A stretch of DNA of 64,000 bases from Macrostomum lignano (Eukaryota): NCBI GenBank assembly GCA_002269645.1, contig NIVC01000056.1, positions 682,001-746,000 on the forward strand, read 5' to 3'. Shown piece by piece: positions 45,501 to 48,500 of this stretch. The notes below the pieces were generated by a model that worked only from the letters and a program-made list of their open reading frames with translations, did not search any database and was not told the DNA's origin. Position 1 is the first letter of the stretch. Every line of letters begins with the position of its first letter. Position numbers and translations under genes: made by a program.

Positions 45501-48500
45501 TGCCTAATATCTAAAGATCAATGCATATACAATATTTTGTGGATTTTATTGATTAGTTCGGTTCCTGTCCCAGACGTACCCAGTTCGGCACAGGGTGCGA
45601 TTCAGCGTCTCTGTGATGATAGTTGAGCACGATCACCGTGAATACGACTGATAGACTGCACATGATCATGGTGCACGCAAAGTACATGCCTAAAATTGAT
45701 TTAAAAGCAGATTTTTTGTTTAGTTTTTTAAGGCTACAATTGATATTCATGCTAAACAGTTTTTTAAGAATGCTTACTGCATCACTAAAAAGCTTTAACC
45801 ATTCACCATCTAGAAATGCACATGGAAGCAATCCAAAATCGCAACACAATCCACATGGAAGCAATCTGACATTCAACAACAATCCACATGTAAGCAATCT
45901 GCAATCGTAACACAATCCACATGGAAGCAATCTGACATTCAACAACAATCCACATGTAAGCAATCCGCCATTCAACAACAATCCACATGGAAGCAATCTG
46001 ACATTCAACAAAAATCCACATGGAAGCAATCTGACATTCAACAACAATCCACATGTAAGCAATCTGCAATCGTAACACAATCCACATGGAAGCAATCTGA
46101 CATTCAACAACAATCCACATGTAAGCAATCCGCCATTCAACAACAATCCACATGGAAGCAATCTGACATTCAACAAAAATCCACATGGAAGCAAGCTGAC
46201 ATTCAACAACAATCCACATGGAAGCAATCTGACATTAAACAACAATCCACATGGAAGCAAGCTGACATTCAACAACGATCCACATGGAAGCAATCTGACA
46301 TTCAACAAAAAGCCACATGGAAGCAATCTGACATTAAACAACAATCCACATGGAAGCAAGCTGACATTCAACAACGATCCACATGGAAGCAATCTGACAT
46401 TCAACAAAAAGCCACATGGAAGCAATCTGACATTCAACAAAAATCCACATGGAAGCAATCTGACATTCAACAACAATCCACATGGAAGCAATCTGACATT
46501 CAACAAAAATCCACATGGAAGCAATCTGACATTCAACAAAAATCCACATGGAAGCAATCTGACATTCAACAACAATCCACAGGGAAGCAATCTGACATTC
46601 AACAACAATCCACATGGAAGCAATCTGACATTCAACAAAAATCCACATGGAAGCAATCTGACATTCAACAACAATCCACAGGGAAGCAATCTGCAATCGT
46701 AACACAATCCACATGGAAGCAATCCACAATCACAACACAATCCACATGGAAGCAATCCACAATCACAACACAATCCACATGGAAGCAATCCACATGGAAG
46801 CAATCCACAATCACAACACAATTCACATTGAAGCAATACACTATTCAACAACAATCCACTTGGAAGCAGCCCTTCATTTAACAACAACCCATGTGGAAGC
46901 AATTCACTATTTAACAACAATCTGCATGGAAGCAGCTCTTCATTCCACGTGATTTTTCATTTCAAACATTCTTTAAATTGCCAAACCAATAGTAGTAATA
47001 AAACAAATTCGAAATAAAACTCAAAACAAAAATTACAAGAAAGGTTATTAATAGTGCATAAACGGTGCCCCCTCCCATTGTCTCACCAATAACGGGAACC
47101 GCATCCGAAGTCGGTGGCATGGCCTCGGCCACCATCATGAGAAACACGGTCAAGGACAACAGGATGGTAACACCTGTGCTCGCCAATTCGAATGTTGTCC
47201 CATAGCGAAGGTGAGAAACAAAGGATATCGAAAATTAACAAAAAAATCGTTGCATTGTATTTGTGCTTTGCAACATTTAAACAAAAATTTACGATTATCA
47301 AGTCATTAATTTTACAACGTATTTCGCGCACACCTACACTGTTCTATCGCTAGAAACAATTTATTTTCAAAAACTAAAAAAGTGTGCATGGCTGGTAAGA
47401 TTGGCAGGCACGGAATGACCGGATCGTTTTGCCAAAATTGATTTTCAAATAAATTAAATAAAACAAATATTAATATAAAAAAACGCGTTAAACTTACAGT
47501 TAAACAAAATTGACGTTGTTACGTATGATTAAAAGATATTAATTATTTTGAAAATGAGAAGTCAGCAAACGATTTAAACAAAATTGTTTTTACTTGCTTT
47601 AAAACTGTTAGCTCACCAATAAGTGGCACCGCTTCGGAAGTCTGCGGCATTGCGTCAGCCACCAGTAGTTGAAACATTGTTAACGACAACATTATTGTCA
47701 CTCCTAGAGTTGTCATTGAAATGTACTTTTACTGCAAATTATAGATTATAGCAAATTATATAGGCCATGCTACAACAGCTAGTTATGAATGGGCTTATGT
47801 TCTACTACAGTTTTAGGTAAGAACAGTGCGCAGTGCTGGGTAAGTTTTTTTGTGAAAATTTTTACTTCAAATTCGTTGATCTGTTTAGAGTGTGCACCAT
47901 AGAAACTCCACCTGTTAGACAGAATTTACACACACCTGTTAGACACAAGCTACACACACCTGTTAGACACAAGCTACACACCTGTTAGACACAAGCTACA
48001 CACCTGTTAGACACAAGCTACACACACCTGTTAGACAAAAGCTACACACCTGTTAGACACAAGCTACACACACCTGTTAGACACAAGCTACACACCTGTT
48101 AGACAGAAGCTACACACCTGTTAGACACAAGCTACACACACCTGTTAGACAAAAGCTACACACCTGTTAGACACAAGCTACACACACCTGTTAGACACAA
48201 GCTACACACCTGTTAGACACAAGCTACACACCTGTTAGACACAAGCTACACACACCTGTTAGACACAAGCTACACACCTGTTAGACACAAGCTAGATATA
48301 AACACACGTCTTTTGCTACGAGTAAACTTCTTTTAGTGTAGTTCCAAACTTATACGAGCAGGTAGCTACGACACAACTCGTAGCAGGTAGATAATAGAAA
48401 TGCATGCGACAGAAAGTGCTCATGCAACAATAAGTTTGATTAAATGACAAAAATATCAACTTTAAACTAAGCTTTCTATTCCGATTGTTACAAATATAAA

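Follow-up and report, generated by a model that had tools for sequence, protein, structure and literature searches.

Does the nicotinic receptor gene on the minus strand of a 64,000-nt stretch of Macrostomum lignano DNA (contig NIVC01000056.1, positions 682,001 to 746,000; hereafter the window) hold two alternative versions of the exon for its pore helix, and what would the choice between them alter in the channel? An initial annotation of the sequence had placed a pair of alternative TM2 exons at 47087-47703, and both of the predicted peptides were found there on the minus strand.

The minus strand of the window carries an alpha7-like nicotinic receptor alpha-subunit gene of M. lignano. The nearest proteins in the databases were all from M. 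lignano, a free-living flatworm. The Pfam domains Neur_chan_LBD and Neur_chan_memb were detected with 212 and 179 bits, respectively, in the isoform joining exons 7b and 8a, and with 212 and 175 bits in the isoform joining exons 7a and 8b, far above the cut-offs in each case. The top matches in PDB were all human alpha7 (E about 1e-127, best 8.5e-128), with other subunits at 1e-91 or weaker, and the named proteins matching the gene product were alpha-7 or acr-16. By these matches, the gene is assigned to the alpha7-like subfamily (CHRNA7 / ACR-16 / insect alpha5-7), whose members typically form homomeric channels that desensitise fast and let Ca2+ through readily. The C-x13-C Cys-loop is encoded in exon 5, and the YDCC motif, the vicinal Cys-Cys of loop C that defines an alpha subunit, is present in both exon 7a and exon 7b. 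The two exon 7 variants had been said to keep the cation-type GEK, and both copies do end in PPDAGEK, which places GEK at -2' to 0' and makes them of the cationic type, not PAR.

The gene model was built from open frames and splice sites around the exon 8 pair (Table 1). For exon 1, the region upstream of exon 2 was scanned for an ATG followed by a hydrophobic core and a phase-1 donor; a single candidate open reading frame passed, with two donor options from one ATG, the donor given in Table 1 and the alternative donor GTGCTTTT. Human CHRNA7 has an exon layout of 45/110/.../195/87/110 nt, as does the M. lignano gene. The boundary between CHRNA7 exons 5 and 6 is missing in the M. lignano gene, and the fused exon contains a 24-residue insertion in the ligand-binding domain relative to human alpha7 (residues about 168-191, numbered from exon 2). 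Two cysteines lie within this insertion, and the Macrostomum paralogues have these cysteines too.

Table 1. Exons, the 8a-8b intron and the intron repeat arrays of the alpha7-like receptor gene, in window coordinates.
Feature	Coordinates	Strand	Length (nt)	Content	Basis or junctions
Exon 1 (candidate, tentative)	60510..60567	-		signal peptide + one G, then GTGAGT	
Exon 2	57717..57865	-	149		open frame + splice sites
Exon 3	55042..55086	-	45		open frame + splice sites
Exon 4	52866..52975	-	110		open frame + splice sites
Exon 5/6, fused	52022..52338	-	317	equivalent of CHRNA7 exons 5 and 6; Cys-loop	
Exon 7a	50042..50236	-	195	loop C (YDCC), TM1, GEKVSF; divergent TM1 type	
Exon 7b	49115..49309	-	195	loop C (YDCC), TM1, GEKISL; conserved TM1 type	
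Exon 8a	47617..47703	-	87	TM2 4'-33', flatworm type	AG/GAGTG...ATTG/GTGAGC
Intron between 8a and 8b	47174..47616	-	443		
Exon 8b	47087..47173	-	87	TM2 4'-33', general bilaterian alpha7-like type	AG/GTGTT...ATTG/GTGAGA
Exon 9	45580..45689	-	110	TM3; split Gly codon joins either exon 8	
Exon 10	42564..43178	-	615	cytoplasmic loop + TM4 + stop codon	
Intron repeat arrays	45815-46790, 47909-48294, 50468-50890, 53405-53912, 55344-55720, 57383-57610				

Every long intron of the alpha7-like gene holds a minisatellite or microsatellite array, and long spurious open reading frames arise from these arrays; in the array between exons 8b and 9, for instance, a 33-nt unit occurs 29.6 times. Upstream of exon 2 there are two simple-repeat arrays of great length (59654-60457 and 61564-63283), the former directly adjoining the tentative exon 1 (60567-60510). 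The repeat-rich introns match the genome character reported for M. lignano (PMC5730564). A second, more distant nicotinic receptor gene follows some 22 kb further downstream, again on the minus strand (about 14789-20415); it has other intron positions, encodes TM1 and TM2 in one exon (16615-16400), and contains no duplicated exons. The window also contains a PDZ-domain-like exon (GYGFNLH..., 39501-39716, minus) and a coding-looking open frame of 342 aa (30707-31735, plus).

Exons 8a and 8b are arranged in tandem, each 87 nt long, entered and left in phase 1, preceded by AG and followed by GTGAG. Exon 8 encodes the pore-lining helix TM2 from 4' as far as the beginning of the M2-M3 linker. At either end of each copy stands a single nucleotide of a split Gly codon. 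Because both start and end within this split codon, 8a and 8b are interchangeable, and the reading frame is intact in all four combinations of an exon 7 with an exon 8. Identity between the two copies is 70% at the protein level and 73% at the DNA level, and they matched each other within the window at E = 3e-11 in tblastn. No third copy of exon 8 or exon 7 was found in the gene by tblastn at E = 50; the other match, at 16400-16489, belongs to the second receptor gene.

Gapless alignment to human alpha7 in 7KOO showed that the prime numbering of TM2 used in the initial annotation is correct. With this numbering, 8a and 8b differ at nine residues (8', 13', 15', 16', 17', 20', 24', 27' and 31'). 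The four substitutions previously listed for 8a (L8'M, V13'M, L15'Q and E20'D) are real, but two others within the same 16 residues, M16'L and M17'L, had been missed; a further three (24' P/Q, 27' D/E and 31' V/L, 8b residue first) lie beyond that segment. The description of 8b as canonical and 8a as deviant holds only in part. In a comparison set of 49 distinct TM2 30-mers from alpha7-like proteins of other animals, 8a is odd at 8', 13', 15', 20' and 27' (8'M in 0 of 49, 13'M in 1, 15'Q in 3, 20'D in 6 and 27'E in 5), but 8b is itself odd at 16', 17' and 31' (16'M in 2 of 49, 17'M in 5 and 31'V in 3). The differences found consistently between the 8a and 8b types of all Macrostomum paralogues are 13' M/V, 16' L/M, 17' L versus M or T, 20' D/E, 24' Q versus P or A, and 27' E/D, and only three paralogues have 8'M and 15'Q.

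The single TM2 with 13'M in the comparison set is a trematode sequence, the alpha7-like TM2 of trematodes (Clonorchis, Opisthorchis, Schistosoma, Trichobilharzia and Cryptocotyle) being of the 8a type, with 13'M, 20'D and PQTSEA. Most other animals surveyed have the 8b type only, and the nemertean Lineus (L004) has only an 8b-like exon 8, of 87 nt and in the same phase. By these residue comparisons, 8b is evidently the general bilaterian alpha7-like TM2, and 8a a flatworm-typical TM2 (13'M, 20'D, PQTSE) and no relic.

Several of the differing positions have been characterized in other receptors. The 13' residue of TM2 corresponds to V266 in the muscle beta subunit. The initial annotation had cited V266M as a slow-channel mutation, and this was confirmed from the literature, in which the substitution, located in M2, slows deactivation about five-fold (PMC2638206). 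In alpha7, desensitisation is influenced by V251 (13'), L254 (16') and L255 (17'), Ca2+ permeability is governed by E237, L254 and L255, and the segment AEIMPATSDS of the M2-M3 linker is linked to allosteric potentiation (PMC4959957). The unusual 16' and 17' residues of 8b thus occupy alpha7 positions tied to Ca2+ permeability. As the type-defining differences fall at known gating and permeation positions, the functional switch proposed in the initial annotation is a reasonable idea, in which the choice of exon 8 would change kinetics, conductance or Ca2+ permeability.

The reading that we consider probable is that of an alpha7-like gene with two tandem TM2 exons, one per mRNA, in which the choice likely alters gating kinetics and/or divalent permeation. 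One of 8a and 8b would be spliced into each mRNA, and the resulting subunits would share the ligand-binding domain, TM3 and TM4 and differ in their pore helices. The exchange would most likely make itself felt in gating kinetics, in divalent permeation or in both, and M2-M3 linker coupling might change as well. This effect is proposed because mutations at 13', 16' and 17' alter desensitisation, and those at 16' and 17' Ca2+ permeability, in vertebrate alpha7.

The exons could also be alternative with the choice mainly serving something besides gating or permeation, such as assembly or partner choice, M2-M3 linker coupling (24', 27', 31'), allosteric or pore-ligand sensitivity, or a supply of nearly equivalent channels to different cell types. 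The M2-M3 linker, the segment linked to allosteric potentiation (PMC4959957), holds three of the nine differences, so that its coupling role or allosteric pharmacology could be as important as gating. In addition, 20'D, found in 6 of the 49 TM2 sequences of other animals, is not exotic, and in the gene models 7a goes with 8b and 7b with 8a, which hints at TM1-TM2 matching. A role of this kind would nevertheless have to accommodate the differences at 13', 16' and 17', which are alpha7 positions for desensitisation and Ca2+ permeability, and we regard it as unlikely to be the main one.

Whether both copies are genuine coding exons can be judged from the paralogues of the receptor gene, at least five of which exist in M. 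lignano. The independent GenBank contig L002 carries paralogue B, in which the order is 7a-7b-8a-8b-9, as in the window. The models of paralogue D, whose source differs from the GenBank NIVC contigs, hold both exon types in the order 7a-7b-8a-8b, and in paralogue E, 7a, 7b and 8a were seen and 8b was not. Paralogue C (L001, P0003) has just one exon 7, which is of the 7b type (13387-13581), and just one exon 8, which is of the 8a type (14242-14328), 87 nt long and in the same phase; as it is without second copies, the cassette has therefore been lost within M. lignano's own gene family.

Comparison of the window with paralogue B revealed 14 synonymous and 2 non-synonymous differences in 8a (pN/pS 0.05; binomial P = 6e-7) and 20.5 synonymous and 2.5 non-synonymous differences in 8b (pN/pS 0.05; binomial P = 4e-9). 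The synonymous proportions between these exon 8 copies (pS 0.6-0.8) are near saturation. The introns of the two genes gave no alignable block, blastn aligning the exons only, and had 2 intron 11-mers in common against 3.3 expected, i.e. no excess. Both exon 8 copies are kept by purifying selection: low pN/pS, saturated synonymous sites and unalignable introns together indicate that both have therefore long been held as coding sequence. The alternative TM2 exon reading of the initial annotation is accordingly backed by the equal length, phase and splice sites of the two copies, by this selection, and by the same layout in paralogues.

A genome-guided RNA-seq assembly underlies the GenBank annotation of M. 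lignano (PMC5730564). For paralogues B and C, the models in this annotation (P0009, P0020 and P0003) are of the 7b+8a form, with one exon 8 each, and the RNA-seq-derived paralogue models recovered all carry 8a. Because RNA-seq-derived models of paralogues B and C use it, the 8a type is spliced into real mRNAs. The possibility raised earlier that exon 8a is not expressed is contradicted for the gene family by its presence in these models of two paralogues, and the 8a type is the sole type in trematodes. Cluster look-ups identified P0002 and P0121 as the only models of the window gene, both UniProt gene predictions of the 7a+8b form, which we take to be automated; P0002 is residue-identical to exons 4, 5, 7a, 8b and 9 of the window. 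When all four 7x-8x-9 segments were run as a profile search, the matches were only short proteins of other animals, with none from Macrostomum, and neither this search nor the database and cluster look-ups yielded a transcript or transcript-derived model of the window gene. From the selection on exon 8b, we infer that this copy too is used in mRNA.

These results bear on the suggestion that one exon 8 copy is a dead duplication relic, never translated. Loss does happen, as the 8b type has gone from one paralogue and from trematodes, and the searches just described recovered no transcript of the window gene; a dead copy would nevertheless hardly have kept its open frame, splice sites and low pN/pS while synonymous sites and introns diverged to saturation, and the 8a type is present in RNA-seq-derived models, so that we regard a relic as very improbable. 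We likewise give scant credence to an assembly artefact (collapsed paralogues or haplotypes) or to constitutive inclusion of both exons together, since, even though redundancy and repeats abound in M. lignano assemblies (PMC5730564) and some automated models (P0001, P0004) join 8a and 8b in series in one protein, the same order and spacing recur on the independent contig L002 and in UniProt models not derived from the GenBank NIVC annotation, TM3 and TM4 would be turned round in the membrane by a second TM2 helix, and each RNA-seq-derived model has one exon 8.

For the favoured reading of one TM2 exon per mRNA, we infer that 8a and 8b are used in a mutually exclusive manner in the window gene. 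Both 8a and 8b have lengths divisible by three, and double inclusion or double skipping stays in frame. Nonsense-mediated decay is out as the enforcer of exclusivity, as an mRNA with both exons or with neither remains in frame, and steric exclusion was ruled out because the 8a-8b intron, at 443 nt, is too long. No conserved docking or selector RNA elements were found in the introns by comparing the window with paralogue B (blastn and 11-mers). A scan of the region from 7a to 9 for inverted repeats gave one notable pair, I2 (47369-47413 / 49664-49708), of 45 nt with 71% complementarity and a perfect 14-nt core, with one arm in the 8a-8b intron and the other in the 7a-7b intron. I2 showed no conservation in paralogue B; it may be a piece of a transposon, or its arms may pair in the RNA over a long distance.

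In the simplest history, exon 8 would have been duplicated in an early flatworm, and trematodes and paralogue C would later have lost 8b. The pair of exons 7, which encode loop C and TM1, looks older than the exon 8 pair. It is doubtful that the pore-exon cassettes as a whole are ancient, such that the D20'/PQTSE exon 8a would be the same ancestral copy as insect '8c' and exons 7 and 8 would be chosen in coordination (7a+8b, 7b+8a). If this were true, the alternative pore helices of alpha7-like receptors would date to the protostome ancestor, and the coordinated choice would select matched TM1-TM2 pairs. A neighbour-joining tree of exon 8 peptides, whose 30 residues are too few, grouped the 8a types with the trematodes at 43% bootstrap, and at 23% with insect 8c added; it was dropped as a judge of shared versus independent origin with the insects, the bootstraps being too low.

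Exon duplications in this part of the gene were also observed in other animals. Lineus (L004) carries a 7a-type copy (RRRK...GEKVSFG, 77698-77889) upstream of a 7b-type copy (RRRT...GEKISLG, 78679-78873), in the same order as in Macrostomum, and its annotated isoforms differ in exon 7. Two exon-7-like segments are also present in a model of the annelid Owenia (P0016), in several crustaceans, in hemimetabolous insects, and in ENA contigs P0205, P0207 and P0231, and 7a-like copies occur in the annelid model. Lineus has, in addition, adjacent exon-4-like copies (L004, 70553-70657 and 70715-70819), a candidate alternative pair in the ligand-binding domain. A 913-aa protein of the orthonectid Intoshia linei (P0011) contains two exon-7-like and two TM2 segments, the latter differing at 20' (D vs E); this may be one more alternative pair, or the annotation may have run two tandem genes together.

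In the literature searched, no report of alternative exons in a flatworm nicotinic receptor was found, and the TM2 exon pair has apparently not been described before in flatworms. The result is incremental, in that it involves no new kind of mechanism. The single Macrostomum gene nevertheless offers a natural side-by-side comparison of a flatworm-type and a general bilaterian-type pore, the 13'M/20'D pore helix being the normal TM2 of trematode alpha7-like receptors, and since M. lignano is open to transgenesis, each isoform could be tested separately in the living worm.

Insects diversify the pore of their alpha6 receptor, the target of spinosyn insecticides, chiefly through alternative TM2 exons. 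Exon 8 of insect alpha6 (Dalpha6) is the closest known case to the M. lignano pair, being a tandem TM2 duplication of the same exon in the same subfamily. Insect alpha6 has tandem, mutually exclusive TM2 exons 8a/8b/8c that predate the insect radiation (PMC1919356). The hemimetabolan '8c' type and flatworm 8a have D20' and PQTSEA in common, whereas the 13'M of flatworm 8a is absent from all insect variants. The insect gene has three copies of exon 8 and the M. lignano gene, from another phylum, has two; unlike insect alpha6, the M. lignano gene has an exon 7 (loop C/TM1) pair, and no exon 3 pair was found in it. Splicing of the insect alpha6 exons was shown by RT-PCR, whereas for the M. lignano gene it is putative. 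Chelicerate alpha7-like genes (Parasteatoda, Argiope, Pardosa 'alpha7 variant', Limulus and Tachypleus) are represented by annotation and database entries whose isoforms differ only in the TM2 exon, including 15'-20'; these variants have other residues (e.g. LQLAQN, QMLVTE), and none has 13'M or 20'D. Among flatworms, the Clonorchis locus (L003) has one exon 8 (8a type, 87 nt, same phase) and one exon 7, and hence no exon choice. Vertebrate CHRNA7, the best structural and sequence relative, has no duplicated exon 7 or 8, and its TM2 is of an 8b-like type with L at 16' and 17'. The M. lignano pair places alternative pore exons well beyond insects, through either recurrence or ancient origin.
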